Shown here in pieces: positions 2,501-55,122 of a DNA stretch of 64,000 nucleotides. The notes under the pieces are model-generated. The model was not told the origin of the DNA. It made no database searches and worked only from the letters and a program-made list of their open reading frames with translations. Source of the DNA: Paraphysomonas bandaiensis (taxonomy: Eukaryota > Protista > Chrysophyceae); the NCBI GenBank assembly GCA_965644295.1, contig CBFFRP010000199.1, positions 248,001-312,000 on the forward strand. Reading direction: 5' to 3'. The translations under genes and the position numbers were made by a program. Each line of letters opens with the position of its first letter. The first letter of the stretch is position 1.

Positions 2501-5500
2501 TCAATAATCGTCGCAATTAATACTACTACTACTAATTATTTCATACTTCTCGCGGACAAACCTTACGGAAATTCCCTCTAGCATTAGTGATTTGCGGGTG
2601 CGGTGCCCTCTGAATGCAGCTTGTATAACAACAGCTCGACCCCCTATCCCTGGGTTTCCATTCGCAAGATTAATGTACACTGCCTCGACACTGGCTGTGC
2701 TCAAATGCGCAGCATGAATGACAACTCGGCGTATATCTCCACCACGAGTATGTGCCTGCCGACCACCTCCAAGTACAACAACTTTATGTTGAAGTCTCAA
2801 ATCATATGGATCAAGCCCAGATGCAGTGTGACACAAAGCACCATTTACATAGGTATTCATTAGCCCCTCTTCTGGCTGTACTGAGATAGAAACAACGTGC
2901 CACAAACCGGGACGTACACGACGAGAGGACTCTGGATCGGCCATCCCACCTCTGGAAATTGCTCTGCTCACCACCACACCATCCCCATTCAAGTACACGC
3001 TAGTGCGGTGCATTCTTCTTGCTTGAGCAATATCAGGCAGAGAAAACCGGAGTAGGCTCTGCAGATGACCTTGAGGTGGAAGTTTTTCAAACCGTAGCTC
3101 TAATGATATTACGAAGCTTCCTCTTTCGCCTCTTGCAAGGCCCCCTGCAGCCGGAATTTGAAGTGTGAAGCTGCAGCCATTAGAACACCGCAGGAAGGTT
3201 GGATTCTTGGAAGGATCACAACGGTCTAATTCCTGCACTTTGATGTCACTATCATAACATGACGCACAAACATAGTACCCACAGTACTGAGTACAGTAAT
3301 AATGAGTTCTACGCTTGTGACATATTGCGCAGTTCATCCAACGGTAATAACAACTCCCTAGCTTGTGATTCTTCGGACATGTCATAGGCTTCAACGGAGG
3401 ATACGCAGCAGTCCCAAGAAATATAGGAATAAAACTACACTTCCCAGTTGAGGCGAGTCGTAACGGAAATTCATTGGAGGAGAACTTGTAGTCAATAACA
3501 GTCACATCGAAGTCACACCCCGGAACTCTTTCCTGTGAAACAACAGGGTTTGCTCCGCCTTTCCGCCTCTTGCTCGTCTCAAGTTCTTCCTCGAATACTT
3601 TAACATCCAAGGCATCCTTGTATGCTTGACGCCGAAGGCGCTCCTCCTTCTGATGTGCAATTTCCGCTTGCTTGCGACGCACCATCACTTCACGAATCTC
3701 TTCGGCTCCATAGGGCTCAACCTTCGACATATGCTCCTTGCCACTTTCAGGCTCCAATTCCTCCTCGGCGTTCTCAGCACTCATTCGATTCGAAGCATCC
3801 GTCAGCATGTCTATATACTCTTTATAATCCACAACTCCGTCACGATTGGAGTCAGCTGCTTCAAAAAAATCTGCAACATCATCTGAAGTCATGTCGGGAA
3901 CTCCAAGCCAGACCAAGGCACCATAAAACTCAGACGGGCTAAGAAAACCAGTATTATCGTAATCAAAGGCAGTGAAGGCTTCCCACAAAGTGAGTTTTTT
4001 CGCTCTCAGTGCTTCTCGAAAAAATATCGCTTGTGCCGCCTGCTTAAGTGCAAGCCATTGATGGGGGACAGTAAATACTTTAGCTACAGGGGTTTCTCGC
4101 CACTGCGTACAACCATAATTAGCATGCAACTAAACATAGTATGACTTACTTTTCTTTCCATTCTTCGCTTACATCCTACAGTAGCAAGAAAAAATCTTTC
4201 ACGATCATATATACTGAGGCATAATCAGTTGCCATATAGATAACTAATTACAATAACTGTACCTTCCGTGTATAACTTTAAGAAGAATATTGAGTGCGGA
4301 AGGTGCGTAATGCATGTCACAGTCAAAAAACCGAAATGAGTTGTGAGCTTTTGCTGCTTCAAATGATGTGGCCTTGGAACCACTATCTAGCCAATTGCGA
4401 GACGCATCTAACACTACACCACCATCACCAGATGGCGACGCACCAGGACCACTCATCAAGGAGTACCGCAATGTAACCTCCGTGGAAGCATTGTTGATCA
4501 AGGGTTGAGGTTGTCCCCCTTTTATTCTCTGTCGAATATGAATAATACGACGGATAGTTTCAGCCTCAGCAAGAGATAGAGCCACCCAATGGCGCCCCGT
4601 ATGCTCAGGCTGAAGCAAACCAGATATCATCAGGTCACGAAATTCTTCGAGAGTCATGTACTCTTTGTCTTTACAGAATCTACTCAGGATTTGATCCAAC
4701 AATAATTCAGTTGGGACTTCATCTGTGGCAGCAATAATTGCATTGTATACATCTTTCCTGGATAGGTGATGTGGGTTCCCAGCTACTGCGGCGTGAAATC
4801 CCAACAACGAATGGGCTTTTGAAAGCGCCTTTTCTTCACTGTCTGAAAGTGTAACTTTCAATTCATCTGCAGTTTTCAGGCGCAATTTATTATTTCCAGT
4901 ATCTGGGGCATACTCCATGACCTAAATACACATTTATCTAAAAATGAGTAGAATATATACCATACCATGACTACATTTTTTACTCTACGTAGCCCTGTCC
5001 ACTTTGGATTGAAGAAATTCGTCGATACATACAGTCCATCAGAAAATTCTAATGGCTCTTGATGTCGTAGCCTAAATTCTTTGAGAGGATAAAAAGGATG
5101 ATCATCCGTTGAGGATATAGGCATGGCCAACATATGAAAAGGCCACGGGCGCTGAACCTCCTCTTGTCGAGAATACTCTCGGTCGACAAACTTTTCAACT
5201 TCGATTTGCTTGTCCTTCTTGGCTTCAACTTCTTTTTCTTGCTCTTGTTCCTGTTCTCGCTCCTGCTCTGTGTCAAGTCGATTTGCTGAGCCTTCCAGCA
5301 TTGCAAACTGACCCACAACTACCAGTATCCTAAAAACAAATTAAAACCATTATGTAGAATCGTACACATACTTATGGCCAATAGCGTGTTGTCCTGGCTG
5401 AAGAAACTGCTCGTGCTGGTCCAGCATAGACCGCAACTTTTCTTCAAACGGCACAGGATCAGGAACACCCGCCTCAAGTGAAAAATCAATCGACTCATCG

Positions 5501-8500
5501 AACACTTTCAGTGACTCATCGACGTTAAGGTTTTCGACAAATGACATGCTCTTGGTGTGATTGGTACCATTTGTTTCACAATGCACAATCCCGTTATTAT
5601 CAGACGTCACATTGCCTGCCATAAAATATTTCGCGTTTTGATGCAAACAGCGGAACGCGTTCTTGCGGTAGAGATTTCCAATATTCTGCAAACATAGCAT
5701 AGTCCATTGAACTTGCTCTGATCTCAGTGAGTTAATGATCAACCACGCCACGATATCCTCCAAAACGTGTTCTTTTGTCGTCTCATTCTGCTGAATAACT
5801 GCATCGCGCAACTCACGCTTCATTAGCTCCGCAACTTCAGGAATAATAAAAACATGAATTTTCTGACCAGATCCAATCCCACGCATTCTATATGCTCCCT
5901 ATGCATTGAAATGTTGCTGAGCACAAGACATATGTATGTCATATCGCACCTGAACATAGTCTCTAAATACCATATCTTTTCCTAGAGTTATCACCGCCGT
6001 GGCGTTAACCACATGTTTGATATCCATACCAGTCGTATGAATCTAAATAGAAGTTACAGGTACAAAGCAATCATTGACGCAGCCTACCTGATCATAGAAA
6101 GCGAATCGCTTCTCTAAAGGAACACCACATTGATCAGCACTTACAACTCTACCCGTAGCTCGAACAAGAACTTGCTGTTTGTCATCGTCATCCAAGTATA
6201 CAACGCCGTCACACCAAACAAGGCCTCGATCGAGTAACTGTTGAGCAACCTCGAGATTAGAGTAGCCAGTGATGAGAGCGCCAGTATCTATCAGAGCGTT
6301 AAAGTGAGGATTCGACGATACCGCAATGCGCTCCAATAATATATCCACTGTCCATTCGTCCTAAGCATGAATATTTTTTACTTCTAATTAAATAACAGTA
6401 TATTGAAGCTACCTCCAGGTGCTCAAAAGAAGTCACAGATCTGTCCAGAACGGTGGTAAGCATCATTCCGTCGTCTCCAGTTTCGTAGTCGCAACGCCCC
6501 AACTCTTCAGGCAGTAGATCACTTGGCGTGCCAGAAAATCCAACACGTTTTCCAACAAGCATATCTCCACCAACAGATTGACCCGATGCTGAAATCTTTA
6601 GGCGTTGCGACCGCATATGCAATGGAAATATGTTTTTTTGTAAATAATGATGAATAACCAGCGGTTCTTGGAAAAGTAAACTATAAAGTTTTTCCATTTG
6701 CTCTTCATTACTCTTCTGTAAAAATTTTAACTGAACCACTTCTTTATCACTGTCTCCTTCAATCGCAGTCTAAAAAACACTTTATTCTCGAAATCAATTT
6801 ATGATAGAATCATACCCATGGCCTTCCGTCTTTCGTGCATTTAAGACCTCTAATTGCTCCTCCAGCAGAATACACCCACCTTTCATGTCGCTGACTGGAG
6901 TCCCTGTCTCGAGCTGGACCTATTTCATGACTAAACTGAGATGTCAAATCATCAATAATGTCAGCGTAATCATCCTTCCTCAAACCAGAGTATCTAATAC
7001 ATGAAAAAATCACAGAAATTAAACAAATAACACTCCTAAACCTGTATGCTAGAATTGTAAGTCCAATTATGACGTCAGGGTGAGCAAACTCTGACGAACG
7101 ACTGGGTACATCTTTTCCGACAAATGGCACTGCTAGCTTCAAGCGCGACCTTGGGACATGTGGATCAGCTTTCAAGGCAGCATCACAATCTTCAGCACTT
7201 AAAAGTCCAAACGAAACACGATTGACTTTAGCCAAGCAATGTGGAAGGAAAGTACTGAGCCAGTTATGACACAAATTCAATAGTTTTTTATGAGTAGATG
7301 ATGTAACATGAGCGATGACTTTTGCCGCAAGAGCCATGCGACGTAGAAAACATAATTCATTTATAATACTCGTATAATGCCGCTGAAGTACCTCTCGAAC
7401 ACTATGATCAATACTTTCGCCCACATTGGTCAGTTTGGGTACATTTATCTCAAGCCATGCAAGAGCAAACGCGCTATCCCGCCCGCAGTGCGGTCCAACA
7501 TACATTCTTTTCAGTCCAGCATCATCATACGGATCACCAGCCAAATCAATCAGATGACGTAATTGGCACGACGCAACAGAAAGCTCTTCAACACGCTTTT
7601 CAATTGCGTCTTCAAGTGCCCTATTCTTCTCAGCTACCTTGAGAAACATGCCTTTCCTGCTAGATTCATCGTCTTCTGTCAGTGATAATTTTTTCATTTC
7701 CAATTCTTCCAACTGGTTGCGATATTTTTGCAGTTGAATTTTGTCATTCATGGAGCTGCTCTGTCTAGTTAGATCTAGCTCAGGAGGCATAATATCTGTT
7801 TCATTCTCATCCAAATCGTCTACTTGGTCCCATGATGGGAGCCCGGTCACCCAAGATACAATATGCTTTGCGTCATCGGTAACAGTTGTTCCTAATTTCC
7901 AGAAATTCATTCTCTCGTCTTCTTTAACTGTGGTATGAGCACAGTAAACTGCTGTTCGTGATGGGGGTAGTGCACCATGAAGACGTGAATGGGGGGACTC
8001 CAAGTCTGTTAGAGTCTGCATCAATTTAAGGTAATTGAGGCTATCGGCACTGTGGTCTGTACTTTCTACAGGAAAAGACCCCCTACCACCAGTACTGCAA
8101 TTATGGCCGCTGTGTGATCCCCACGACATACCGCACCTCATACACGTAGTAGTATGGCTTTTGACACACGATGAACTACACCCAAGTGTATTTTCATCCC
8201 CTCCAACAATCACACATCGCAACTGTTGCTCCAACTGCAGAGTTCTAGACCGTGCTATAGCTTCATCCACATCACTACAACGCTTAACTGTGAAGCCGCT
8301 GTCCTCAAGAATATTACAGATACTCGGAACAGATCTATCACCCGGAGTTATCGTTCCAGCTCCAGTACCCAAGCTCTCAAAAGCCTGGGAAAGCCACACA
8401 ATAACAGAATTATCCATTGAATTGTCTCTAGGACACTCCAATTCTGCAATTTTTTTGTGGAGTGCGAATATTTCACTTTGCAATTCTGCTAATCGTTTTC

Positions 8501-11500
8501 CACAATCTGAAATATGTGCCTCTATCTGCTCGTCAACAGCATACACTTCATTCACCTATTTGGTACGGATAAGTTAATGAAATAACACACAATTTAATAA
8601 TACCAATCTGGCGTGATCTTCTGCAATTGCTTTCGCAGTCTGCAAATGGCGTATTTGTGCACAAAGCAAGTGTTCGTGTTCAGTGTCAGCATGCAATGCT
8701 TCCACGGCATCTTCTTGTAGTTTTCGTAGTGTGGCGTTCGATTGTTCTCTCTCTTCATCTGTCATTGATTTCTGATATCCCAGTGTAGGAACTGGAACAG
8801 GAGGAATTTCGCCAGTGTCTACCATTGCCCTACTGAGCGCTATATCGATGAGGCTTATTTTACTTGTGTTGTCGCTTCGAGCGGCAGCACCTTCAAGAAT
8901 ATACCGAACAGCTTCATCTCTGTCAATACCATGAAGGTGCTGCTTCTGCAACCACATATATGCCCACTCAGCCATTATTGGCTTCATGGTTTCGTGATAG
9001 AAATCAACGTTTAAAAGAGTAACTGCACAAACATATAAAATAGGTCGCTATATATCTAACACCATACCATGAGGAAGACGCTGCAGATGACGGGCCGCCA
9101 CACCCTCATGCACTGCAGCGGCAAATCGTTTGAGAATATCTTGTGCAACTCCTCGCTGTTCAAAAACAGAGACTTTTCCAGTGTGGGTGTAAAAAATGGC
9201 ATCCAATAAATGAATTGGAAGATTCCATCTCTCGCCTTCATCTGAGCCATCAAGATCAAATTTGTCTCCAATAGGAAAATTAAGTTCGCTCTTTAATGGA
9301 TGCAATATGAGATCCACTTCATCCAAAAGCATCGTTCCGCCCTTAAAGAGATTCAATATTCTCGACAGTTCTTCGGCCTGAATTTTCAGTTCGCCTTGCT
9401 TTGATGTAACCCCAACAGCGTGCGCTTCCTTTAGCTGCTGCAAGACTTCGATGTACGAAAGCATAATACTCTTTATCGTTGTTGGAGTAGCCACCACAAC
9501 ACCACGGTTTCGAGCAGCATTCTCCAAACTCCGTCTCATTGCCGGTTGAACTGTGGTAGACCGATCAAAGTCTAAAGTATAAATTCGCTTCACCATAATA
9601 GTAGCAAATGTCTCCCTCATTCGTGTTCGGCTCATTTCTACAAGTGCCTTCGGGACAACAGAGAGAACGAGGCTTTTTCCATCAGCAAGTATCAACGCCA
9701 ATAAAGGGGCGACCACACTGGTTTTTCCTATTGATATACATGTAATTGAACAAAATTTAGACATTTGATAAAATTACCAGCTCCCATAATCATTTGCTTC
9801 ACCTTTGAAACTCCATTCTTTAAATTATTTCTGAAGTTATCGACAATTTCTACTTGTTTTTGTCGAAGTTGAATATTCCACACAAATTCAAAGACAAGAT
9901 AACGGGGATCAAAGTTCAATTCACGAGTTGGCGATATGTTGACGTAATGTCTTGCCATTTTAAGGGCTTTTGACAGCTCCTCACCCATCTGAACTAGTTT
10001 TGGTATCAGGGTGGCTGAGTGCATACTTCTATTATCTTTCGGTATACTCAGGACCTGTTATATTCACAAATTAAAGTGGATAACAATCTCTTTAACTAAC
10101 CTTGTGTAAAAGATTCTCCAAGCCAATAGCCATTCCAAGGCAGCGATTTGTATGACCCAATCTATTCGATCGTAGCATACACAGAATTACCAGATTAAAC
10201 ATAACCGAAATCGTATCCGCAGATAAGTAGGGATTCAAGCCGAGTAAATCCCTTTCACCTTCACTGGATATGAGCACACCAAACAAAAATTCTATCCAGA
10301 CCGCAGAATTCTGTCCAGCCAATCGGCACAGAAGAAAGCGTGTTTTCGACACTCGTAACCGGTCATCCAGCTCCTGGTCTATATCTACCCAATTAGCCGC
10401 TTTTTCCAGGAGTGGCACAGTGTCCTCTACCATTTCCGCATCTGAGTCTCTGAGTCTGTATAGTTCTGATATCAGTTTCTGTATGCCGATATATGCTTGC
10501 GATATGACATCTTCAGCACCTTCGACACCGTTAAAATAGTTGACAATGTTGACATTAGATAAGTTCTTAAGCTTTGGGATCGACATTGTATTTGCACCAT
10601 TCGCAAATGCTGCAACATCATCTTTAATACGAGATAAGATGGAACTAGCAACAGCCGTTTTAGACGCTTCATGTTTGCTGACATCAAACGCTAGCTCTGG
10701 ATTTACGAATTCCATTCCTAGTTCTTCACGTCGACAGCTTGTTACTACCCCGGCAACATCCCTCAACGGCTGAGTCGCCAGTGCATCCAGTAGCTCATCA
10801 GACGCTGCCATATTCTTGAGTACAGAATCAATATTCTCACCCGGACTGTTCATTAGAAACTTGCGAAGGAGAACCATTTCAGCTGGAGTAGCATGAAGAT
10901 TTAAGACGCGAGCAAATTCATGAACAAATTGCGGTCCTCCACCCTTAATATCTGCAACTACATGATTCGGTAAGCTCCCACCACGTATAAATTTTACTGT
11001 CGGTAATGATTCAACTCCAAATAGTCCTGTCAGTTTATCGCACTCGTCAACATCAACCTGTTGTCAAAGGTTAACAGGGGAGCAAAAATAAAAACTATAC
11101 CTTCAAAAATATGGCTGTGGGTGTACGCATTGATAACGAACGGAAAACAGGAGCGAGCGCTTTGCAAGGACCACACCACGTAGCAAAGAAATCGACAATA
11201 AATAGTCTATTTGGGTTGTGATTGATAATTTCGATAAAATGGTCCATACTACTGACAGGAATTGGCGGTGATGGACACAAAGAGTCCTTTCCTAATCTGT
11301 AGTAAACAGATGCCGCAAGATTGGCAATCGATGACTCTGAAATCGCTTGAATACTACGCCGTTCGCAACCATAGTCGCTCAATTGGGGTCTGTCCCAAGT
11401 TGAGGACAATGGCATAACATACGACGTTGCTGGAGGAGGTAGCTCAACATACGGTGGTAACGGTGGAAAGCGAAATGAATTTTTGCGTTTCATTTGCTTC

Positions 11501-14500
11501 ATCAACGGGACAATTTTTGCAAACAGATCGGCTAGCGGGGAACGAGGTTCCGTTTCATCTACCCAGCCATTGAAGTACGGTACATTCGATACTTTGCGGT
11601 TGTCTTTAAACCTAGGCATGCGGAGTGATACTTGACGGTTACGACCTAAAACATTTATAACAGATGCGGGAAGTGACTTCGAATGTCGGTCCACAAACAG
11701 TTGGGAAAGCAACAAAGCAAACCTATGAGAATCATTCGTACTTGAACCCTTTTTGACGTAAGCGCTGTAACCCCCCTTTCCACCATACATCATATATCCA
11801 CCCATCATTCCGCCTCCAAGCATTCCTCCTCCATACCCTCCACCAATGACTTTACATCTACTCTCACCAGATAAAAGAGAGTAAAGAAATAAGAATCCTA
11901 GACCGGCTTGTTTCCCATTCATAGACTCAGAACCACTCCACACCTTCTCTAAGATCTTCAGAAAACCCTGTCCTGTTAAGCCCATCGGCTTTTCGTATTT
12001 CATAGTCAGAATTTCCCACAAAGCTTCCATCCCTTCACCAAGTACATGACGACGTAAACGGTTTGCGTTCCCACTATTTTCTGTGGTATATAATTTCGTT
12101 TGCAGATTGCATTCATGTATATTACTCTCGACAGATACAGAATGATGCGATTTTCCATCCCTCATTGCATCCTCTAACTCACGGGATAATTCGGTAGAAT
12201 AAACTTGCCACCCTGCGTCACTTTCCCACATCCATCGAATTCTCGATATTGGAACTTCAACTTCCTTTGTTACAGTATCATCGGGCAACCCTTCATCAGG
12301 AGAGTCTAAAATTACATTCTGCTCCGCTGGAGTAATATTTTCAGCATTCACAGCTGATGGAGACGTTAAAATATCCGTTTGCTTGTTACCTCCCATTGTG
12401 TCTTGCTCGATAGCCACATCTACGACAGCGGCACTTTCTACACCTTTACAGTTTATCTGTTCCCTTTCTTCCCATCCGGGTAGAAGTAGAGTAACCGACG
12501 GCTCAGTGCCTAACATACTCTCGTCGGCATTATCAGGATGAGAGTTTTCATTATCCTCATTACTCCTAGAATGGGAAGAACTGGTGTCATCATCACTTGG
12601 ATTATCGCAATTAGCCTGCTTAGACTCGCATTCATCACTGGGAAGAAGTGATGACTTTTCTTCTTCCACGTAATCAAATGGACACAAACAAACACAGGGG
12701 AAAATTTCAGTTGCACCAAGAAGACTATATATTCCTGTGATGGGTTCACATACGGGGTTAGAATCAACAAAAAACTTCAATATTCCGCCTGACCCTGTGT
12801 CTAATTCGCATGTAACGAGGCAATCTTTACCATATAATGGGGCCAGATCTTCAAAATCTATTCTAGATTTCTTGTTTTTTCCATCACCATCATTTTTCTC
12901 ATCCTCGAAAAATTCTGTTGATACATTACGAGTTCCTGTGATTCTCTGTTGTATTACTCCTTTGTGATAGAGCAAGCCATTGGCGTACAGAGCTAATGAT
13001 GAACCCGCGTCCTCCTTTCCTCCCAAACATGGGACTGCAGCAGGTCCAAACTCTTCACATCCGTCCCCACAAATACCAAACCCGTCTCCTACACCTCTTC
13101 TGGCCGGTTCGTGATTCCATCTCATGGTCCATGTATGTACCCCCGTATTCGGAAGCATACCTATTGTACCTTTGATGGCCTCAATATCATTTCCGTACTT
13201 CTCTTCCCTTAATTTTTTCTTGTATGCAGCCATTTTCTCTCTCCACTGTGCCGACCTCTCATCCCGCTCCTTCTGCTCTTTTGATAGATATTCTTCCTCG
13301 TTAGGTACCGGACAGCGATCGCCTCTTCGACGTACATGCGTAACCCTTCCAGACACATTCCAGCTACAGTAGAATCCAGTAATCTCATAGGACGAGATCT
13401 GAACATCACTTGGCCAAATACCTACTTCTGAGGTGTCTGCATGTCCTTCATATATTATTCCCTTTTTATAAGCTTTCTCTAGCTCTGCTGATGTCGAGGA
13501 GGAAAATTCTTTCCATTCACCGCGATTATTTAATGCCCATTCCCACTGCACTTGATCCTCATCCTCAAAGTCACGCATCACGACAAGCATCCCTTCCTTC
13601 TCTATGCGTAGCGACTCTCCGCACTGTTCTGGGTCCCACGTCCACTCTAGACCCCCAGATTCCTCGATTTCATCTTCCAATGAAGCTTCAAGACCCATTT
13701 CGACAGCTTTCTCCAGACGAAACCTGTGACGGCGCCGTGCATGGGCAACTTTATCCGCTTCGTTGAGATGAACCCCCATGGCTCGAATTATCTTTTCAAT
13801 TACTCTTTCGGCCCCCACAACTCGATCTATTTCAATCCCATTGCGAAAGAAAATGAAGGTAGGAAAAGTAGTGATATTGAACGATTTAGAAATGGCTGCT
13901 ATTCCATGACAATCTGCACGGACAGAGAGAAAAGTGGCCATGTCCTGATACAACGGGACTAGTTCTGTAACTGCAGGCATAACTTTAATACAAGCAGAGC
14001 TCCAAAGTGTATGAAAACATGCGACGACAAGCCACCCTTCAGGAGGAGCGTCAGTGGTGTCTCCACCACACACCTAGTACACTAATCACTTGTATAACTC
14101 TCGTATTTTCTTATGCTTACCTGAATAGCCCAAGAGCTATCACCATCCTCTGCAGTTGTAATATCCACCATCTGTGCATAGTTTTCTCCAAAAACAGTGT
14201 TGTCTTGGTAGTAAGGCCAGTTCGATAAGAGTGTTCTAGGTGGTGCTCTGCACAGTACTTCGGCGTCACGGTTTTCTAACTGTGCGCGCAACTGATGTAT
14301 GCGATTATAGCACAACGCCATACTATAATCATCATGAATTTTTTTGTTGTAACATGGACAATCTGAAGAAGTCACCACAATGTCTGACTCAAGCAACTGT
14401 AATTCTTCTTCTGGTGCCAATCTGCATGAGCTCGATACACTGTCAAGCTTGGCAATATGACGAGCGCATTCAATAGTAAGATCCCAAGGAGATTCGGTTC

Positions 14501-17500
14501 CTGAATCAATTGTCACAAGAGATATTTTGAGGCGACAAGCATGTGCGTCTGGATGCCAGTCATTGTTCGTGCGCGAAAATCCACTAAAAATATCATCTCC
14601 TTCAGTATTGAATCTCGTATCTGTGGCAATGCTATCCGCCAATCGAAACACCTCAGCGTAATCTCTGTGAAGAAACCGCAGGAGCATCAAGTAGACAGCA
14701 GAATTTAATCCCTTGGTAAGCAAAAAAGATAGCGATACATGTACAGGATACAGAAAATATCTTTCCGACAACGGGATTTTTTTTCTGTTTAAAACAAGGA
14801 ATGTACTAAACGGCTCAGTTGCTATATGTGGCCTGTGGGGTGGTATGACTGGTACGAGGACCTGTGTTTCCCCGCGCACATTTGACACAAGCAGAGAGTG
14901 TGGAATGCCTGTCAGCATCTTCGCAGTCAATGAATTACGCTCATTCGAGATAAATATGTCTACGTGATCGACACTGTAGAGTCTCATAATTCCTTCGTGA
15001 TCAGGCCTTGCCACAAAAGAAAGCTTAAGGCGAGGAAGTTCGACCAAGTCAATGGGTGGACACCCAACAGGTATTCCATTGGCCAAAGAGCAATTCTACA
15101 ACAAGTCAAGTGAGACTATTACAACAGCTATTCAAAAGATATTTAAGGACGTACATTACAATTGCTTGTTTTAGTCCATGCACATATATGCCCAACATTC
15201 TCTATCCGCGATAGAGTTTTCATGATGGAAAATAAACGGGAATTTTGTGGAGCGTAGAGAAGGTTGAGTAGTACCATATCCTCTGAATCTGTGGGAGAAA
15301 ATGGGGCAAAATCAACTCCCAACCCAATAATCTCACTTGCAACAGCAGATGCTAATTTTTTCACATCTGTGAAGGGCTTCGTCAAAGAACTGCTGCCCAA
15401 TCGACTCAAAGCTGCAATGCACGCTTCTTCATTGCCATTGCATGCAGCTATAACTTCACCAAGCTCATTGAATTGACAAAATAGTATACGTTCTTTCTCA
15501 ATCACTGTGGGTGCATGATCTCTTTCATCGTCGCTATCACTCCGAAAGTCGTCATCTTCGCTGTCAGACATTCCTTCCCAGTGCCATACCCCTTCTCCAC
15601 GTGCTCTTTTCTCCGATTCTCCACGCTTCTGAACAACCTCGGGGTCAACTCCTCGTTGTATTCCCACCCATTTATAATCGTTGACGTACTCGATGTCGTA
15701 TGTAGAATTATCATTCACACGGCGAACGACACATGGCCAATATTCCCCTTTGCCTTCATAATCGCACTCAACCTCTGAGTCAACTTTGAAAATCATTTCA
15801 TCATCAACTACATCTTTATCCATATCAATATTCTTCTGTCTCGTCGGTCGCGCAAGAAGATGTAACGATTCGCAAACGGATGCAATGCGTTGGCGAAGCC
15901 TGAAATCACGTTCCACAAGTTTCTTAGGGCGACGTATTATAGAAATAGTTCGTCCAGGCAAACCTGTACACTGCAATACAGACGCATTTTTGAACATTGA
16001 GCCAGCGGATGAAATATTTTCATGTGACCCTGCCATTGAGATTTCAATAAAGATCATGAATTCTCCATCATCAACATTCGGATAACCACGAAGCCGTTTA
16101 TACCCGCGAGATGCCATGAAGAAGTTATCAGCAACTGTTCCTTGAGGTACAATACTTTCGTCCTCCCAAAATGTATAGGCGTCCAGAAGAGCGTCAGGAA
16201 CGAGCCCATACATAAGGCGAGATGGTACAAGTACTTCTCTTCCTCCACTTAGATTAAGAGGGTGCTGTTGATCCCTCACGACCAATACACTAGACGCAGG
16301 GCTAGCGGATACATTGTCAATATCATTGACGAGATAGTTATTACAACCGGCTGGATATGACGAACCCGCGCCACGAATCCAAAAATCTGGGTATTGAGCC
16401 TAAATTCCATATTATTGATTTATACGAAATTAAACTACACACCTGTCTGTCCTGAATACTGGGTTGCATTTCTCGAAGGGTATAGCGAGTGTCAGTTGTG
16501 AGGTGTAGAGAGTACCACCACTCTCTCCCTTGCGAAACACACTCATATACATGTAAACAACGTAATCGCTTGAATAAATACACTAGCTTGAACGGTCCAC
16601 CAAGCATAGGGTGTAATCCCAAAAGTACAGCAACCTCGGCATCATTCGGTAAGGCCTTCTCAGGCAGCATGAATTGCATAGGTGGAGGTTGGGGACCATT
16701 GAAGAAAGTTTTCCGAATAGGTTCAAATATCTATAGATACAAGGAAGTCACAAAACAGGCATAGAATAATCATACCTACATTCACAATCCACCGCTCGCT
16801 GTCAAATAGTTCAGCAGGGTCATACTCTCTCTCCCATTCATCTCCTAGTGGAGGACAAACTGTATGCGCAGTTGGCCAGTATTCAAGCTCATGATTAAGC
16901 CCCACGAGGCGATAACATTGCCGATTTTCTGCTCTTTCAACAAGCGAGGCCTGAATAGTCGAATCCCCAAATATCATCATAACATCGGGATGATTGGCAA
17001 TATCCGAAATTAAGGCAGCCAGATGTTTACTTCTAAGAGTCATTTGACCTAATTGCGTGTCGATTTCAACACCAAGCATGCCAGTATCTGCGACTTCACC
17101 AACTTCACAATCGTAGGATGTCTGCAATATCAATGCTGGAGCTGGTGGAAGATCGTCGATGTTATCGCTGCCAGATTCATAGCCATTTCCGTGTGTCGTT
17201 GCAGCAGTTCGAGTAGAACCCACCGCCCACCTACCACATGACCTTTTTCCTTGTATACGACTCCACCTATTCTGTTTGTCTAATACACCAGCACTTGCCT
17301 TGAGACTTCCAGTCAGAGAGGAACTTACTTGAAGTGCTGTTTGCATTACTTCATCAAGAACACCTTGACGACAAGAAGTGGCCCAACTAATAAGCCGACG
17401 ACGTTGTACCTGCAAAATTTCATACAATTCTGTTTCTGGCATATGCATACGAGCTCCTTCAGCCGTAGCTTTATTCCAAGTGTGCCGAGTTGTCAAGTAT

Positions 17501-20500
17501 ACAAAGCTACCAATTAGTGTCTTTACAGTAGCAGCGGTGAATTCATGCTCTTTGCTATTACGATATAATAATATTTTGTGGGCATGCAAATCGCAAGCAA
17601 GTCGAGAATTTCTATCTATCAACGATTCGTTGTTTGGTTCCGAGGATGTTTGTTTGTCAAGTCGTTTTAAATAGTCTTCGAATAGATTTTCAAACTGCAC
17701 ATGTAAGATTTGACGTAGATCTGCTCGACCTTTTTCAAGCTTTAAAAGAACATCGTCGTACACGTCTACCTCACGCAAGGGGATGTCGGCATAATCGTCC
17801 TCTCCACGTGCCCAGCAAATTAAAAAGGTTAAGTAATTGTCTACTCGAGCAGCGAGTCTAGTAATGTACAAAATGATCATAGTAGAAGTGTTGAATTCTT
17901 TAGCACCCTCATCGACAACGGAGCCCGTGTCCATAGCAAGAGCCCCCTTGAGTAAATCAAGGATAGATCGCAAAACTGTGTCAGGAGATCTGTAAAGCTC
18001 ATTCAAAAGAAGTCCATATGGCGTTGACAAGAGTTCAGGGTGCCGTGTGGGCACCATCTGCAGTTTATATCAAACATATGATATCAACAAAAGCAGTTAC
18101 CTTAGGCTCAACTCCTCCCATATCCATTGCCATATACATTCCCGGCTCAAACATGACTGAGTCTAATATGTTTCTCAGCTCCGGCGATTGAAGCTTATGG
18201 ATTCTATCTTCGCTTGAAAAGAAAGTTATGAGAAGAGGAAGTCTCATGTATGGAACTGTCAGGTACGAAATCAACAGTTCGGAATCACGCTGATTTAAGA
18301 CTTGCCCGAATTTATCATCAAATGACGGCAAATTCGGTCGATATATGACATCATCCTCCGTCTTTATCTTTGGAGGTGGGACATAAAAAAATGGTGTCGC
18401 CGTTGAAGGAAAGCGATGGGAAGGAAGATGCTCCGGATCAATTATCTTACCAGTTACAGGGTGGGTCTGCCTAGGATCGGGGCGACACTTTAGTTGAGTC
18501 CCAAAACCACTCACTTCATATCCTCCATTCGAGTCGTCCCATGTAAAAACAAGTTGTGCAGACATCCGATCCCGCCGCATTATATTTTGTGGAGCCTCAG
18601 GATCTGTATAATTCATAAATACTTTACGATCTGTGTTGAGAAAAAACTTCCACCAGAAGGCAACATCACGATAGCATTGTAGCTCCGGGTAGTTTTTCAT
18701 CTAAATAATGAGTTATAGTAGTATTTTGCGAATGTTTGCCCTCACCAAGTATGAGTTAGTTGGCATGGCGTCGCACAGCTGCATATGGGGTCGAGAAATT
18801 GGAATAGCTATTTCCCGCCCAACCATGCGAAGGTATTTTATCAGCTCCTTTCCTGGACGGAGAACATAGTCCTCCTCCCATGAAAATATTTTTCGCAGTC
18901 GGTTTTGACTTGGGCTTTGAAAATAATCCAACACAGCAGTTCGTGCTATGTTTAATTCAGGGTAGTGCACCTCAATAGTTTCAGTCTGGAATAATTCATA
19001 ATATTTGATAAGATATTTGATATATCATGCTACACAATAAGATAAGCCAAACCTGTGTTGCAAACGATCCCACAGATATTCCAAATCCTGGATGACCCAA
19101 CTGACGACCAGCTGCGGTGCGCCCCATCAATTGCGCGCACATCTGCACACACTAGACTGTAAATGCAACCAACACAGTTTAAATACCCAACCTCCGATGG
19201 TTCGTCGACCGCTATTTTACGCATAATTGCATCTGACACAGCACACATGCACCCAGGAACAATGACACACACTGCATCAAATGGTCGGCTCTGCTGAATG
19301 GACATCGCAGCAGCTGCAAAATGCTCACTTAATCGTTGCAATGTCAACAACAGTTCAACCTAAGAACGCAATTACGATTCCATAGCTTCTCAGAAGGAAA
19401 CAGACCTGAAGTTCATAAGTAATTGATCCATCCCATATGCAGCCAAGTGCGGTTACAGCCCGCTCTGCTTCTTTACCGACTTCAAAATCAGGGAGTAGTT
19501 CTTCTCCAAAGCACTCAACTTTTTCCACCACACTCTCTTCCTTTTCATTATCCTCCTTCTTGTTACTAGGTTTGATTTTGCTTGTGATTTTGACCTCATC
19601 ATTGGAACGCTTTTCACACAGACGTTTAGCCTTTTCTTCAGCTCGTTTGACTTCTTCTACAGCTTTTTTAGAGGCGCGACGACTACTTCTCTCTGATATA
19701 TATAGTTCGCTTTCAGTCATACCAATGCCTCGCGGTTTCGGAATCGGCACGACCTGTTGAAGGGCACATTCATGACATGAAATACAATAAACTAATCCAA
19801 GCGTCATACCTGGGTGAAGACATGTTCAATGACCGATAATATTATAAACTTGTCGTTCTTAATGCAGTGGCTCTGATTTTCAATCAATGTACAAATCTTA
19901 TCACACATTCGAATGGCAGAAATAGCCTCTTTTCGCGTTACGGCCTTACGTGGAATCTGGAGCAAATCTACAGGAATGTACTTTCCCAGTGCCACAGTCT
20001 GACCTATAGAGTATAATCTTTAGATAAAGCGATGCATATGTCAACGCACTACCTGGGTCAGGTTCACTATTAGGCATATCCCATGCCATCATATTTTTGA
20101 ACTGTATGAAGGAAGGGTCATCCGATTCATTGGACATTGGCCCATCGAGGTTGAGCAGGGGAGGCAAATCAACAGAGTCATCTCGGCAAAAAGAAAGCGA
20201 TGAAGACACTTCTTTCACCAACTGATGAATCTCGCCCAGCATTACGGAGGTGTCCACGACAAAGTCTCCATTTAAACTTTCACTAACAACCAACAGTTTA
20301 TAATACGTAATAAATATCGAATACTTACGTCGAATCAGCCTTATCTGTAACAATAACTGCATAATGACTAAGTTCCCTGACCACAAGTTCGCACACCTTT
20401 TGGCCATTTTCGTCTGGTAGCATGTACACTAGATCATTTTTGACCATTTCAACCATCTTGGTACATAATGCGAGGTGTATCTATGAAGCACATTAACACA

Positions 20501-22795
20501 TTTATCAATGAAGCATGTATTCCTCACGATATCGCATTGCAAATCAGTTAAACCTCGACTTCGAAGCATATAGCGAAGGGCCTCGATAACACACCTCACA
20601 TACGCGGTCTGTGATCTCTGGGGTCTACGCCACTCACCACAGAGGCCAAGTTGATCACGTTCTTGCGCTCCAACCTCAGCCTCTACAAGTGATTCCTCCA
20701 GTGGTTTTCCCGTCAAAAATGGTAGCAACACATCATAGAACCTAGTGGTATCTCCGTGATGAGTATTTACAGCCAAATTATAAGCTGCGGCCCAAAACAC
20801 ATCATCGAGGGCATTCTTCTTCGGAATACCATCTAACACCAAGCATGTACGATAAGATATTTCCGGAGCAGATTCAGTGGCAGATACTGCATGATTTTTG
20901 AGGCCACCAAAAGGGTCCGTCTGTATCACAACTAATTTAAATGTTCGCTCCGAAGTGCGTTGAAGCAACAGTAAAATCTCTCGATTCTCCACAAGGAGAG
21001 GCAACAATAGAGAGTCACCTTCGCCCACACTTTGTAAAATTTTCTTGAGCTTTCGCAAAAAACTGAGAAGCTGTGACTCAGTTGACGTCTTTAGCATCCG
21101 CAACATTTGCTTAAATACAGCAACACTCTGTTGCATCACGTGAAGGGTATCAGAAAAGCCGACACGAGCGTTGTGGTCAAGACCAGAAGAAGGGCGGGTC
21201 AACATAACATGCCCGGCCACTTTCTGTAGAACAAAATTAAGTACAGTGTAGGACCAAGCAAGATTACTGGATCCCTCCAGAGTAGTTTTCTCGACAAAAG
21301 CATCTCCGAACACACCAACAAGTGATGGGGTCATCCACATTGGTCTGGGCTTGGGGAAGAGCTCCGCAAGTGAGAGGCCCTGCCGTTGCTTCGCTACCTC
21401 AGCACGACGCTCCTCGTCAAACATGCACAATACCTATTACAAACAAACAAAACATCAGTACTCTCGTCGGTAGATTGTCAGCTCGTATACTGTTTATACC
21501 TTGTCTCGTGCTCTACTTGTCTTAACATCGAGATCAGTGGAGTATTTGGCTTCCACACGTACCGAGCGCAAAGCTATATTACCGGGCATCATACCAGTCT
21601 GTGCCGATGAAAAAAGAAAGAGCCCATCAGGGTCCAAGGCGAAACGCTCGTTTGCAACTATTGATTCTTCCTTCAGAACTACCCCTGGTTCAGTCCCAAC
21701 CCCTAAGGTGTGGTGAGTTACAAACAAAAAGTATGTTGAAAAAAGGCACATACATGTCCTCAATTCGCCTTTCTCTTCTGCAGAGGACGCACATTTTACC
21801 GTTACTACAACGCGTTTCCAGGCCCCGACCTCGATACGTGCCCGGGTTGTGTCACCATAAGTACCGAAAAGCCCGACACCACCGGCTTGGTTGATGACAC
21901 ACTCACCATCAGACCGCGAGAGAGCTGTCTTACCTGACCGCTTATTTTCCTCTGAGTGAATCAACGCCGTCTGGTATAGAGACAATCCTTCCCTTGGAGG
22001 TGCCTCTAAAAGCTTTATATCCATCGTAATAGTGTACGCATTGATGTACTCCTTGTACCACTTCCCGTATCCACCCCCCATGGTCCCTCCCTTTCCCCAG
22101 GCGTCCCCTCCCCACACGTCCATAGAAGGCCCATAGCAGAATTTAGACCCCATTTTAGCCCTTCGTTTCTTTTCTTTCTCTGCTGCCCGACGTCTCTCTT
22201 CTTTTTTTTCGTCACCGCCATCCAGCAATTCCGAAACATTCAACTTGAGTCGATATCCAGGTTTGATGATAAGGGCCGTACTCCCATCTTTCAGTGTCTC
22301 AAAAACAGCCGCCGCTGAACCATTATCACATGCTTCTTCGTTTTCCGTAACACCTTGATTGTCGTTCCAAGATGTGTAGGTTTGTGAAGAAAATGAGACC
22401 TCCGCAGGTTTCTTCCCCTTTCCAATATCATCATCCTCTTCTTTGTCACTCTTCTTCAGCTTGGCGGCTGCTTCAACTTCAGCTGTTGCTTTTTGCAACA
22501 AATCATCGGCACGTTCTGGGTCAATAATTTCTACATTTTCAGGGAATAACTCCCTGTCTCTCCTGAAATCAAAAAACATGTATGGATCCTCCACCTTCTC
22601 TTCCTCTTCTTCATAACACTGTTGGTTACCTTTCCCTCTTCTTTCATAATCATCATCAGATTCACTATCACTCTCACCCAATACATCTTGATTAAAAGAA
22701 TCAAAGTCATGCTCGTAATCAGGGCCAATAGTTGTTGTGACAGGTTTCGGTTGAGATTTATTTTTTTTTGATTTACGTGTTTTCCCACGGCGCAT
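2501..22795 (-). CDS. Giant multi-exon (~30 exons, ~6,200-6,300 aa) DUF3638/DUF3645 helicase-like P-loop protein with LamG, Tudor, thioredoxin x2, SPRY, WWE x2, EF-hand, Zn-finger and IQ modules
   Basis: Consecutive minus-strand ORFs join in frame through 29 short GT-AG introns (e.g. 21753-21703, 21499-21434, 7041-6994). Motifs: QMIMGAG|KTS (Walker A, intron-split), LLDEVD (Walker B), RLKLAVPFVGKDVPSRSSEFAHPDV (DUF3645), GFSGTP, ALIDTGALITG, DQ|IHTTGMD, Q|GAYRMRG, EQEREQEQEQEKEVE, WCGPC, EF loops DYDNTGFLSPSE and DSNRDGVVDYKE, IQAAFRGHRTRK. Confidence 0.88.
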
Positions 22796-23358
22796 ATTGC
22801 CCGTATTTTAGATTACCTTTGAGGTAAATATGCAGTTAAGAACAATGTACTATCTATTGAACAATATATTGTTCCTAGGTATTGTATTGTATCCAAGATA
22901 TCGTCTCTAGATTATATATATATGCTTGTGCATCTATCTCATAACTAGCTTCATCCATCATCATGCATCTATCCTAGAGCCTATAGCTCTCCTCGGCAGA
23001 CAGTATCTTTTTCTTCACTCTTCTCATCTCCTTCCCATAAACTCAGGTAGGGTCGTAGCATCTTTCATGTGGTGTTTACTAACTTTTTGTGTTAACTTTG
23101 CAATTTATTATGATATTGGATAAAAATGCCGTTTTTTGATAAAAATACCATAATTCTTACATCCTTACAGTCAACGTGTTTTTGATTATGACAATCGAAT
23201 CAAAAAGGCCAATCTGGAGACCCAACAGGTGATCGTGTTAATGGAGGAACATCTATCTGCAACTGTTCCGTGGAGTGTGGAGTGAGGAGTGCCCTATCGT
23301 ATCTAATATTTGTGTTTTTCTGCAAAGGATTTCTCTGACAAAGGATTTCTCGATTAAT

Positions 23359-25749: not shown

Positions 25750-26187
25750 ATGGATCTGTCATGAGTCACCCTTTCAGTGATCTCTCCATCACTGTCTCAA
25801 GAGTAATCTTACGACCGTTCCTATAGCTAACAAACATCCACTCGATGAGGATCAGAAGACTGAAAACTCTGTATCACTGTATTCTACGGTATTCCTGCAA
25901 TATAGAAGAAGGTTTATGAAATTTCGTAATAAAATTCCACCCTTCCACCCTCATTTTTGAATACAAAGAGTGGCTACTTCGAATGCAATCAACATACATA
26001 TAGGCATTGATACGTTCGTATATGACATACATAGTCATACATAGTACTGCTGACTACCATACAGCAATATGTCTGGTAGACCTTAATATAAGCATATTAC
26101 ACGGTGGGGAAGATATTGAGCACTTTGTGGGTATATAATCTCATTTCTTCATATTACCCGTCGATTGATACTACAATCTTTGAATTC

Positions 26188-27237
26188 ATGCACTCTAGAA
26201 TTATACAGGAAGAGAAGCAGGCACAGGACTCATATGACAGTAAGACACTTAAAGGATCACGTACACTTATGTGTGCTGTGGATGGTAGTGATGGATCGGA
26301 TTTGGCTTTTCAAACTATGATGGTGATGAGGAGAAAACTCGATCATGTGTGTATGTTTCACGCATACTCTCTTGAAAAGGAGGCTTATCTACCCCCACAT
26401 TACCATAAGGACGAAATTTTATATCATTATCAGCAGGAGTTAACTAATAATTTTCACTTACCAACAACGAAATTTTCGCTGTATTGGGAAGACCGTAAAG
26501 GTCGCAGTGTAAAGGAAGTTATATCTGACTTCTTGGGTGAATTCGTCGGAATTCGGAACCCAATGTCAGGGACTCGGCGTCCACCAGACTTTTTCTTTTG
26601 TGGATTTTCTGGACGTAAAAGAGTAAGATCGCACTCAGCTAATAGCATAGCGGACAGAAAGGCTGAGTACAAAGATAACATGTTTCGTTCTATTTCTGAG
26701 GGAGATATGACTGACGACAAGGAATCTGATGGAGGAAAGGAAGCTGGCCCCAGTAGGTACCGAGAAAGGGCTTCCTCCAATGATTTAACTCTAGGTAGCA
26801 CGGCCGATTTCGCATCTCGTAATCTTCGTGTCCCAGTAGTTATTGTGAAGCTGGAGTTATTGGCGGACACGAACCGGTGTTTCGTGGTTGCCGTTGATGG
26901 TTCGGAACTGTCCATGCGTGGCTTTCGACTAGCGCTGACCCTTGTGGGCCCTCATGACAGGGTCAGATGTGTTACAGTCGCACACCCTCAGAGTGATTAT
27001 ACTGATGAGATTCGAGCAGAATATGAGGCTATTTTCCCAACACTGCCTGTATCAGACTGCGCTTATGAGGTAATCAACCGCCCTGACCGGTGCTCTATCG
27101 CGCAGACCCTATGTCGCTACGCCCTAGACCAAGAGGCGGACTTCATCGTAGTCTCTCCACGACCTGCTGAGGACCTGTCTAGTGTTACTGAATACATTAT
27201 TTGCAATTCATTTTGCTCTGTTATATTAGCCAAATAA
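26188..27237 (+). CDS. Tandem universal stress protein (USP) domain protein
   Basis: Two USP starts (LMCAVDGSDGS, FVVAVDGSELS), LGSTADFASRNLRVPVVIVK and SSVTEYIICNSFCSVILAK; intronless; first ATG at 26188. Confidence 0.9.
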   Translation: MHSRIIQEEKQAQDSYDSKTLKGSRTLMCAVDGSDGSDLAFQTMMVMRRKLDHVCMFHAYSLEKEAYLPPHYHKDEILYHYQQELTNNFHLPTTKFSLYWEDRKGRSVKEVISDFLGEFVGIRNPMSGTRRPPDFFFCGFSGRKRVRSHSANSIADRKAEYKDNMFRSISEGDMTDDKESDGGKEAGPSRYRERASSNDLTLGSTADFASRNLRVPVVIVKLELLADTNRCFVVAVDGSELSMRGFRLALTLVGPHDRVRCVTVAHPQSDYTDEIRAEYEAIFPTLPVSDCAYEVINRPDRCSIAQTLCRYALDQEADFIVVSPRPAEDLSSVTEYIICNSFCSVILAK

Positions 27238-33600: not shown

Positions 33601-33860
33601 CTGGAGGAAGAGAAGAGGTTGTTGAAAGTGGAAGTAAGCGCGCAGCAACATATGAAATAATGGCCAACAGAGGCTTGACGCCACATCGTAAGAAATCGAA
33701 TCGTAATCCTCGTGTCAAGAAACGTGAGGCCTTTGCCAAGGCGGTTACTGCTAGAAAGGGACAAGTGCGCGATGTTGTTTCTGGATCAACTACTGCATAT
33801 GGTGGTGAATTGACTGGAATTAAAGCTAATCTGTCAAGGAGTAGAAAAATAGGAAACTAG
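30648..33860 (+). CDS. UTP3: U3 snoRNP / SSU processome protein UTP3 (SAS10), multi-exon
   Basis: Acidic N-terminus; YLEVKQQLLLSYCTNTVFYLMLK (Sas10/Utp3/C1D); C-terminal KRAATYEIMANRGLTPHRKKSNRNPRVKKR...YGGELTGIKANLSRSRK (Sas10 C-terminal domain). Confidence 0.93.
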
Positions 33861-50658: not shown

Positions 50659-51091
50659 TATTAATAGATGTGTATTATAGTTTAAGGGATAGACTTCGAT
50701 AGAGTGATACACAGCTAGCCTGTTGAACATATCATACAGCAGTACATGCATACCACTATCACCATACCAGTCATATACATATAGGAAATTCCTACACACA
50801 GGTACACAGAGTGTATAGAGAGCAGTAGGTAGTACAGCAGTACATGCCTGCTACGAAGTACATACTATATACTATACTGTACTGGAATGTACACAGATAT
50901 GGACAATCTGTACAAACGCACAGTTGTATATAAAAAACTCTAGTTTTCCTATATAAAAAATAGGGGTTTCATAACATATACTTACATAAAAGTGACCTTT
51001 TCGTCTGCTGTGGTGCTGACCATGCCCTCATTCTTCACTGATATTGTGTGTTAATTACATGGCTATCTCATACCTATTAACATATCCGAAT

Positions 51092-54319: not shown

Positions 54320-54883
54320 ATGGAATCAACTACCACGGAATCAACTACCACGGAATCAACTACCACGGAATCAACTACCACGGAATCAACTACCACAGGG
54401 GGCATTAGAAAAGTCGGTGATGGGGAAACCAAAAATCGTAACTCCTCTGCGTTAGCTCAGTTTGCGAAGTACTTGGAGATGCGGTTCGACGGGAAGAAGA
54501 GGTATAAGGAACTCATAGACAGTGATATAAATGTAGAACTATTTCAATGTTTCGGTGGCTTTTTGATCGATCACGCCGTCCATGGAACAACGAAGAAGCC
54601 TTTGACCCTAGGTACTGCTTGGCAGTATTTGTCAGACACGAAGACTGCGCTGACGAAGCGATTTAAAAGAAATGAGTTATTAAGCAGCTCCAATGAGCTG
54701 TGGTACAAAGATGTGAGAGCGGCAGTATCAAAGCATATTATCAAGCGGTGTATCGCACAAGGAGTGCGTATATCAGAGAAAACAAGTCCAGTGGGGAAAG
54801 AACTAATGAAGCGCATAGGTGAATACATTATACATTTCATACAATGTGATAGGTACACCGGTATACCGCCGTATACTGTTTAG
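54320..54883 (+). mobile_element. Truncated tyrosine-recombinase (Crypton-like) element: N-terminal core-binding domain only
   Basis: SALAQFAKYL..LFQCFGGFL..KPLTLGTAWQYLSDTKTAL..WYKDVR..KTSPVGKELM resembles, from memory, the SAM-like domain of stramenopile YR transposon proteins; no catalytic R/HxxR/Y follows. Confidence 0.55.
54322..54396 (+). repeat. Perfect 15-bp tandem repeat x5 encoding (ESTTT)5
   Basis: ggaatcaactaccac repeated five times without mismatch. Confidence 0.97.
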
Positions 54884-55122
54884 TTCTCCACAGGGTAAAA
54901 AAAACTTGGTTTTTCTGCATGATCGCCAAATTTCCCTGATTTCAGCTTATATATACGTATACTGTAGTCTTGAGGTATGTAAATATTTGGTGTACTTTGT
55001 GTACAACACTGTGAAGCATGGTGCTTGTATAGAGTTTGAGTGTTTACTCCTTATATTCTGTTGCACGTCGCAGATTAGCGATCCTTCAAAGAATACTTGC
55101 TACAGTGCTTTATATTACACTT

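Follow-up and report, generated by a model that had tools for sequence, protein, structure and literature searches.

A single gene of Paraphysomonas bandaiensis encodes a 6,291-amino-acid DUF3638/DUF3645 protein with a probable SF2-type ATPase core, a degenerate protease-like domain and lineage-specific binding modules

The window analyzed here is a stretch of 64,000 nucleotides (nt) of the chrysophyte Paraphysomonas bandaiensis (contig CBFFRP010000199.1, positions 248,001 to 312,000), and all positions below are numbered within it. Open reading frames (ORFs) on the minus strand fill 22807-2504, and the GC skew is negative throughout. This locus is a single expressed gene for a protein of 6,291 amino acids (aa), a member of the DUF3638/DUF3645 family of giant proteins. 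A preliminary description, made from the letters of the window alone, had joined about 25 ORFs into one protein of about 6,250 aa; the single frame and the approximate size held, while the number of exons rose to 30. The transcription unit has the following features.

22795..2501, minus strand: coding sequence; 30 exons, 29 GT-AG introns of 42-67 nt, 6,291 codons plus a stop, no internal stop
22796..22897, minus strand: 5′ untranslated region, minimum extent; the RNA contig of run X10 extends to 22897, some 100 nt further upstream than the ATG (22795)
18058..21753, minus strand: stretch with 11 RNA-verified introns, seen as joints in the X8 and X10 contigs, each CT..AC on the plus strand
18058-18100, 18701-18745, 18986-19052, 19143-19191, 19360-19405, 19754-19809, minus strand: RNA-verified introns, first part
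20004-20052, 20283-20328, 20481-20527, 21434-21499, 21703-21753, minus strand: RNA-verified introns, second part

RNA contigs from four public runs were compared with 17300-23299. Two spliced contigs, one of 14,919 nt in run X8 and one of 14,861 nt in run X10, lead from the 5′ end of the gene into exons 21-22. Their 11 joints and continuous frame, together with a collinear homologue (P0029, below), bore out the proposal of one giant gene. The joint 19751|19808 recurs in a marine metatranscriptome, X18. The remaining 18 introns were placed by homologue-guided scoring together with frame and splice consensus. Among the 11 introns seen in RNA, five fell within, or displaced, junctions first predicted from the frame. 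The portion of the X10 contig below 17300 measures 9,828 nt, which is the exact sum of the predicted exons down to 7042, and the X8 contig extends 171 nt past the end of the X10 contig. Of the words sampled from 6000-15999, a fraction of 0.91 was contained in the RNA runs, where loss of the 11 introns predicted there would give 0.914, and words were detected down to 6000. The 5′ boundary is clear because a separate RNA contig starts beyond ~23100; an in-frame stop at 22808-22810 lies immediately upstream of the ATG.

Homologues were needed for three details of the 3′ half. They revealed a hidden in-frame intron (6994-7041) with no stop inside, and scoring of splice paths against them recovered the mini-exons 6042-5950 and 4213-4150, the first of which restores ATPase motifs V and VI. 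Both the Walker A motif and motifs V/VI are complete only once spliced. A scan of the 6,291-aa protein for transmembrane-like windows gave none except a strand beside Walker A, and the protein is predicted to be soluble. Its N-terminus is strongly basic.

Three irregularities were seen in the RNA contigs. Both long contigs end at 6823-7042, the X10 contig exactly at the donor of exon 21 (7042) and the X8 contig 171 nt further on; intron retention or alternative splicing may account for the assembly breaking beside intron 6994-7041. At 22557, both contigs have C where the window has T, which could be a strain difference or editing. At 22769, the X8 contig ends in 15 loose T's. The site lies among the A-rich codons that open the gene, and the probable cause is an artefact of assembly or priming in low-complexity sequence.

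For the homologue search, a 581-aa exon was compared with 1.84 billion cluster representatives at E<=1e-3. It found 1,204 proteins, many of them exon-sized fragments and 14 longer than 2,000 aa. The closest full-length homologue, P0029, is a 7,115-aa gene model of Paulinella micropora (Rhizaria); with 38-44% identity, it runs collinear to aa 25-6233. P. chromatophora contributes a complete transcript ORF (P0024) that matches the C-terminal half up to aa 6230, and P0116, a 5,819-aa transcript ORF, matches from the N-terminal domains through the ATPase. Matches to P0106, P0108, P0115 and P0116 fall in 6-7 ordered blocks. More distant members (4.7-5.8 thousand aa, including those of diplonemids) retain aa ~245-920, ~1000-2060 and ~2280-2620 and two ATPase blocks; they are without most of aa 2650-3700 and without the insert at aa 4345-4820.

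This comparison separated a family core from parts added in one sub-lineage. The order of the core is LamG-like domain, AnkH/AnkD-type fold, long region without Pfam matches, a conserved domain that we call B, two-lobed ATPase of superfamily 2 (SF2), EF-hand pair and second LamG-like domain. Its features in the present protein, from N- to C-terminus, are these.

21530..22123, minus strand: N-terminal LamG/ConA-like beta-sandwich, aa ~225-405; its family profile also matches the C-terminal LamG-like domain
20528..21361, minus strand: AnkH/AnkD-type (clan CE-like) cysteine-protease-like domain, aa ~440-717, from a fold search with an AlphaFold2 model
15839..20474, minus strand: long region without Pfam matches, aa ~720-2100, taken to be helical in the preliminary description, common to the whole family; collinear BLAST matches to P0029, P0106, P0108, P0116 and others
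14220..15307, minus strand: conserved B domain, aa ~2278-2620, 36-54% identical to 10 aligned homologues
9084..9916, minus strand: DUF3638, the first RecA-like lobe; Pfam DUF3638 81.6 bits against a cut-off of 31
5689..7283, minus strand: DUF3645 and second RecA-like lobe, downstream of DUF3638; Pfam DUF3645 56.6 bits against a cut-off of 25
6524-6535, 6022-6039 and 5878-5952, minus strand: SF2 motifs III (SGTP), V (HTTGMD) and VI (QGAYRMRG, across an intron)
3767..3994, minus strand: EF-hand pair; Pfam EF-hand_1, _6 and _7, E 4e-10 to 1e-9; kept in P0106 and P0108
2672..3214, minus strand: C-terminal LamG-like domain; Laminin_G_3 E 5.8e-4, 20.5 bits, under the cut-off, and the family profile of the N-terminal LamG

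Both family models (PF12340/PF12359, known from protists, fungi, microsporidia and Chlamydiae/Legionellales) were matched, with Walker A and B present, and the order of domains is the same as in relatives of 4.7-7.1 thousand aa. An N-terminal piece of DUF3638 lies in the preceding exon (19.4 bits). The Walker A motif GAGKT (9784..9717) is split by intron 9728-9777 and rejoined on splicing, and Walker B is DEVD at 9312-9329. Eight family cores were aligned, and all of them have invariant motifs I and II, SGTP and HTTGMD-type and QGAYRMRG-type motifs; motifs V and VI were recognized by eye against the SF2 consensus. Pfam gave weak matches in the homologues, to ResIII in five of eight (best E 7e-6) and to DEAD in two of eight, and none for the window's own exons. 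Because of the invariant motifs and these matches in homologues, we placed the engine in the SF2 superfamily. With SF2 enzymes of the ResIII, DEAD and SNF2 types it shares two RecA-like lobes and motifs I (GAGKT), II (DEVD), III, V and VI, whereas here the lobes are parted by a large insert. The Helicase_C and SNF2 models gave no match, and no nucleic-acid-binding module was found.

The protease-like domain was recognized by its fold. An AlphaFold2 model built from exon 3 and seven homologues had a predicted local distance difference test (pLDDT) score of 72. In the VIA structural comparison it matched AnkH of Legionella pneumophila (6mca) with Z 15.4 and a root-mean-square deviation (rmsd) of 3.8 Å over 209 aligned residues, and AnkD (7ew8) with Z 14.0 and rmsd 3.3 Å over 212; the next match had Z 5.8. 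Foldseek agreed on the AnkH/AnkD fold (E 1e-4). By sequence, profiles found neither protein (identity 6-8%), sequence and profile searches of the PDB with this domain gave nothing useful, and an Atlas search returned unnamed clusters only. The likeness extends over ~210 residues of the cysteine-protease-like domain with its cap in AnkH (6mca) and AnkD/LegA15 (7ew8, 7kj6, 7xql), and it includes a His on a strand, an acidic residue ending the next strand and a nucleophile position opening a later helix, which is the His-Asp-Cys order of clan CE. For the AnkH domain, a clan-CE-like cysteine-protease fold has been described (PMC6712400), in which the triad follows the order His243, Asp258, Cys324 and the motif is GNCSW.

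His596 (20891-20893) is the sole invariant column among 13 eukaryotic and bacterial sequences and lies on model strand 179-182. Asp619 is the putative catalytic acid, an acidic or amide residue closing the strand after the His strand. At the start of the later helix, the nucleophile position is occupied by Ala692 (20603-20605) in the motif PQRSQTAY. Chlamydial ORFs and the eukaryotic homologue P0108 have Cys in the same column (PQRxGTC); P0029 and one paralogue of the present gene (on contig C151, below) have Ser there. The chlamydial relatives have GTC(A/T)(W/Y), comparable to GNCSW of AnkH. With Ala as the nucleophile, the domain cannot act as a conventional cysteine protease; the ancestral domain looks to have been catalytically competent. 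The preliminary description had called this part papain-like and degenerate, and the fold and the Ala in place of the chlamydial Cys agree with that wording. Unlike the 460-aa secreted effectors AnkH and AnkD, the present protein has no ankyrin repeats, has lost the Cys and carries the domain within a 6,291-aa ATPase.

The B domain was absent from the earlier list of domains, which was otherwise nearly in the right order. It is also present in chlamydial homologues. Its AlphaFold2 model (pLDDT 77) has a beta-rich half and a helical-repeat half, and it gave no Pfam, PDB or fold match beyond generic helical-repeat folds (best Z 6.3, Foldseek E 0.2). Pfam gave no match for the N-terminal LamG-like region; the family profile of this region matched the C-terminal LamG of homologues and aa 6090-6184 of the present protein (i-E 0.004).

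Added to the core in this sub-lineage are a Tudor-like segment, a thioredoxin with WSSAC, a SPRY domain with a nested WWE domain, a second WWE domain, a thioredoxin with WCGPC, an insert between the ATPase lobes composed of an alpha/beta segment and a two-zinc-type finger, a ZZ-like finger and an IQ motif. These and a linker are located as follows.

15629..15811, minus strand: Tudor/Agenet-like segment, aa ~2110-2170, weak; Agenet E 0.22 and typical sequence pattern
13783..14055, minus strand: first thioredoxin fold, WSSAC; Thioredoxin_2 E 5e-4, 20.8 bits, under the 27-bit cut-off
12658..13665, minus strand: SPRY domain, aa ~2790-3125; WWE domain 1 is inserted after its first strands and before its core
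12028..12249, minus strand: WWE domain 2, aa ~3262-3335; Pfam WWE 49 bits, best stretch exon aa 613-675
11758..11850, minus strand: Gly/Met-rich low-complexity linker, missing in homologues P0015 and P0024
10890..11265, minus strand: second thioredoxin domain, WCGPC; Pfam Thioredoxin 73.7 bits; intron 11058-11100 splits the domain
7311..8831, minus strand: ~490-aa insert between the ATPase lobes, with an alpha/beta ("receiver-like") segment and a Cys/His finger; absent from distant family members
3242..3424, minus strand: Cys-rich ZZ-like finger, read by eye in the sequence, with no Pfam match
2582..2644, minus strand: IQ-like motif (IQAAFRGHRTRK); Pfam IQ E 0.0028, 17.7 bits, under the cut-off of 20.3

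The accessory domains fared unevenly in profile searches. The second thioredoxin, both WWE domains (49 bits against a cut-off of 21.1, in two stretches) and the EF-hands lie above the Pfam cut-offs, as do DUF3638 and DUF3645, while the first thioredoxin, the Tudor-like and receiver-like segments and the IQ motif remained weak. The first thioredoxin has Ser for the nucleophilic Cys (SxxC). An Atlas search with the Tudor-like segment gave no match. The Pfam SPRY model did not match even at E 5; a 16-sequence profile searched against the PDB placed GUSTAVUS, SPSB1 and SPSB4 on top (E 0.007-0.09, two collinear stretches), and the Atlas likened the region to SPSB-like clusters (0.85). The SPRY core motifs align with those of SPSB/GUSTAVUS, from which the present domain differs by the WWE nested inside it and by having no SOCS box. 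Compared with WWE proteins such as RNF146, the WWE domains here match Pfam, and no RING accompanies them. For the receiver-like segment, Response_reg gave no match, only designed alpha/beta proteins matched (~40 residues), and strand 1 is not followed by a visible acidic pair of the usual kind. The finger of the insert, near 8090-8180, has eight ligands in the near-invariant order C,C,H,C,C,H,H,C in a 27-sequence alignment (IBR E 0.98).

Within the family, the thioredoxin-SPRY(WWE)-WWE-thioredoxin block and the 490-aa insert set this protein apart; otherwise they occur only in a marine sub-lineage made up of Paulinella and metagenomic fragments, and loss of the protease nucleophile is a further difference. 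The block recurs in 16 metagenomic fragments at 34-61% identity. With these fragments and a P. micropora protein collinear end to end, the architecture is not unique; the preliminary description knew of no described protein with it.

Other relatives carry other additions. UBA and UBA-like domains occur in P0108 along with a third LamG, a RanBP2-type zinc finger occurs in P0106, and P0134 has a thioredoxin inserted within the ATPase. The 62.6-Mb genome has three DUF3638 loci, namely the studied gene and paralogues on contigs C151 and C66. The C151 paralogue (~51,760-63,830, plus strand) is of the canonical type, collinear with aa 407-5860 and without the thioredoxin-SPRY/WWE block and the inter-lobe insert. 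The C66 paralogue (165604-188937, minus strand) is one uninterrupted frame of 7,778 codons with no introns, as against 30 exons in the studied gene. Its B-domain-like match is weak (27% identity); it also has DUF3638 and DUF3645, followed by two SPRY stretches, leucine-rich repeats (LRR) and ankyrin repeats, and it ends in a polycystin domain and a PKD/ion-transport channel.

A scan of prokaryotes with one genome per species gave 32 loci, most of them in Parachlamydiaceae, further Chlamydiales, Ca. Berkiella, Coxiellaceae and unnamed metagenome-assembled genomes (MAGs), in line with the earlier statement that the family occurs in protists and some intracellular bacteria. The bacterial ORFs are 3,200-3,900 aa long and carry the ATPase core; several also have the protease fold and the B domain, and in some the protease fold retains a Gln...Cys motif. 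Judged by sequence comparison, the family core is common to protists and Chlamydiae/Legionellales. One member, on PABI01000099.1 from an 'Anaerolineaceae' MAG, is 51% identical to the eukaryotic core (B domain E 1e-112). Because it is far closer than the other bacterial matches, it is probably a eukaryotic contig binned in a bacterial MAG.

A literature search by Pfam, InterPro and PANTHER family found no functional study of these proteins, and a 2025 paper describes the mechanism of DUF3638/DUF3645 proteins as still undefined (PMC12615304). A possible connection of the DUF3638 giants with viral-tegument-like (VTD) deubiquitinases was dropped, as the VTD paper is silent on them.

We propose that this member of the DUF3638/DUF3645 family is a scaffold built on an SF2 motor and fitted with swappable ligand-binding modules, a reading to which we give a probability of roughly 0.6. 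The motor would be driven by ATP and would either displace or remodel a macromolecule that is bound, or change the scaffold from one state to another. Interchangeable modules, here SPRY, WWE (for poly- or iso-ADP-ribose), Tudor-like, ZZ-like and LamG, would recruit substrates, and the dead protease domain might grip a peptide or a ubiquitin-like tail without cutting it. Activity could be tuned by Ca2+/calmodulin through the EF-hands and IQ motif, and by the single intact thioredoxin site. Module swapping is suggested by the UBA domains and RanBP2-type finger of homologues, the thioredoxin within the P0134 ATPase, the SPRY-LRR-ankyrin-channel arrangement of the C66 paralogue and the C151 paralogue without the thioredoxin/WWE block. 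The WWE domains here, the UBA domains and RanBP2-type fingers of relatives and the origin of the protease fold among Ulp- and deubiquitinase-like enzymes share a theme, and a link to ubiquitin-like and poly-ADP-ribose signalling is probable.

Several points weigh against this proposal. A search of the PDB by sequence gave no match for the ATPase core, which is therefore placed in SF2 without a subclass and could act on protein, nucleic acid or another substrate, and the B domain is without a recognizable fold. The likeness to AnkH/AnkD is purely structural, with no sequence-profile match, and the putative equivalence of the Cys position comes from motifs and secondary structure. Protease-type chemistry does not follow from the fold, since LegA15/AnkD is reported to be a GTPase as well (PMC9757750). 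On the side of the gene model, exons 23-30 have not been seen on one RNA molecule with exons 1-22, and exons 26-30 have no RNA evidence from this organism.

The protein may alternatively be a cell-autonomous immune or surveillance machine that senses ADP-ribose, glycans, redox state and Ca2+ and answers through its ATPase in the manner of RNF213 or ZNFX1. Accessory modules do vary among paralogues and relatives, and they include types known from innate immunity (SPRY, LRR, ankyrin, WWE, UBA). Obligate intracellular bacteria of amoebae also hold copies of the family, and AnkH/AnkD have its protease fold; pathogens often mimic or target host defence. Furthermore, DUF3638 gene families are expanded in microsporidia (PMC5423893). 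Nevertheless, we consider this alternative unlikely. The gene is expressed in ordinary culture runs. Unlike the expansions of immune receptors, there are just three paralogues in 62.6 Mb, and unlike fast-evolving sensors, the core is 40-50% identical among distant protists.

The comparison with RNF213 and ZNFX1 came from the preliminary description. RNF213 (mysterin) has six dynein-like AAA+ modules with RING and RZ fingers; ZNFX1 has an SF1 Upf1-like helicase with NFX1 fingers and an RZ finger. Like them, the present protein is giant, has an NTPase engine and carries many binding modules within a single polypeptide. In Pfam scans of 23 stop-to-stop ORFs (eight of them also with relaxed settings; the two small rescued exons were left out), no dynein-type AAA+, RING, SF1 or NFX1-finger domain was found, and the RZ finger was not specifically sought. 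Since none of those domains was reported and the ATPase is SF2-like and not AAA+ or SF1, the likeness stands in concept only. The further idea that the protein integrates ADP-ribose, redox, Ca2+, methyl-mark and glycan inputs had been drawn from the names of domains and found no support: the first thioredoxin is without its nucleophilic Cys, the Tudor-like segment is weak, and LamG domains need not bind glycans.

The motifs of the engine bring up another alternative, a nucleic-acid translocase or a remodeller of chromatin or ribonucleoproteins that would be recruited and switched on by poly-ADP-ribose, ubiquitin and methyl marks, like ALC1/CHD1L or ZRANB3. Motif III (SGTP) and motif VI (QxxxRxRGxGxGQ) resemble those of SNF2/ResIII-type translocases, the N-terminus is very basic, and WWE, Tudor-like and ZZ-like modules are typical of chromatin and DNA-damage proteins. 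We nonetheless find this doubtful: our searches found no recognizable DNA- or RNA-binding domain, EF-hands, IQ, thioredoxin and LamG domains are unusual for chromatin enzymes, a paralogue ending in a membrane cation channel fits a DNA-tracking core poorly, and the bacterial homologues come from organisms without chromatin.

A giant thiol-disulfide oxidoreductase, for which all the remaining domains would be scaffold, agrees with the one canonical WCGPC site and with the label 'thiol-disulfide isomerase/thioredoxin' given to relatives by JGI; it is very improbable, as the thioredoxin block is absent from most family members and from the C151 paralogue, the first thioredoxin has no attacking Cys, and conservation is highest in the ATPase, the B domain and the protease fold.

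That at least two adjacent genes or a decaying pseudogene were read as one frame is hardly credible: exons 23-30 are indeed not on the RNA contigs, which stop at 7042 or 6823 near an intron, but the ATPase spans that end (motifs I-II upstream; III, V and VI downstream), gaps between exons are just 42-67 nt, the spliced frame of 18.9 kb is stop-free, gene models and transcripts of homologues stay collinear as far as aa 6233, and RNA words reach down to 6000.

In protists and fungi, few conserved proteins are as large as those of the DUF3638/DUF3645 family, and no function has been assigned to any of them. This locus provides an RNA-backed, full-length example, and its comparison with relatives gives an anatomy for the whole family: an SF2 motor, the B domain and a protease fold hitherto seen only in Legionella AnkH and AnkD, with a catalytic Cys retained in chlamydial members and lost here. 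The anatomy makes the family testable by ubiquitin-like probes on Cys-bearing members, ATPase assays and assays of ADP-ribose binding, and the family suggests a source for the fold of two poorly understood Legionella effectors. A far-reaching version, which we offer as speculation with little chance of being right, would see the DUF3638/DUF3645 giants as ancient, undescribed ATP-driven machines in which an SF2 motor is coupled to an AnkH-type ubiquitin-like protease or, in many eukaryotes, to a dead derivative of it that holds substrates. The Legionella core effectors AnkH/AnkD and the chlamydial giants would then be pathogen copies of a host machinery, and the present protein a stress or infection surveillance version gated by poly-ADP-ribose, Ca2+ and redox state.

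Nothing suggests that the neighbours of the giant gene form a functional cluster with it. The ORFs at 26104-27237, 29275-29907, 33126-33860, 51044-52729 and 55036-56028 of the window are ordinary eukaryotic genes, and this set of neighbours comprises a universal-stress-protein domain, a PIF1-like helicase fragment, Sas10/Utp3, a methyltransferase and a sulfotransferase.

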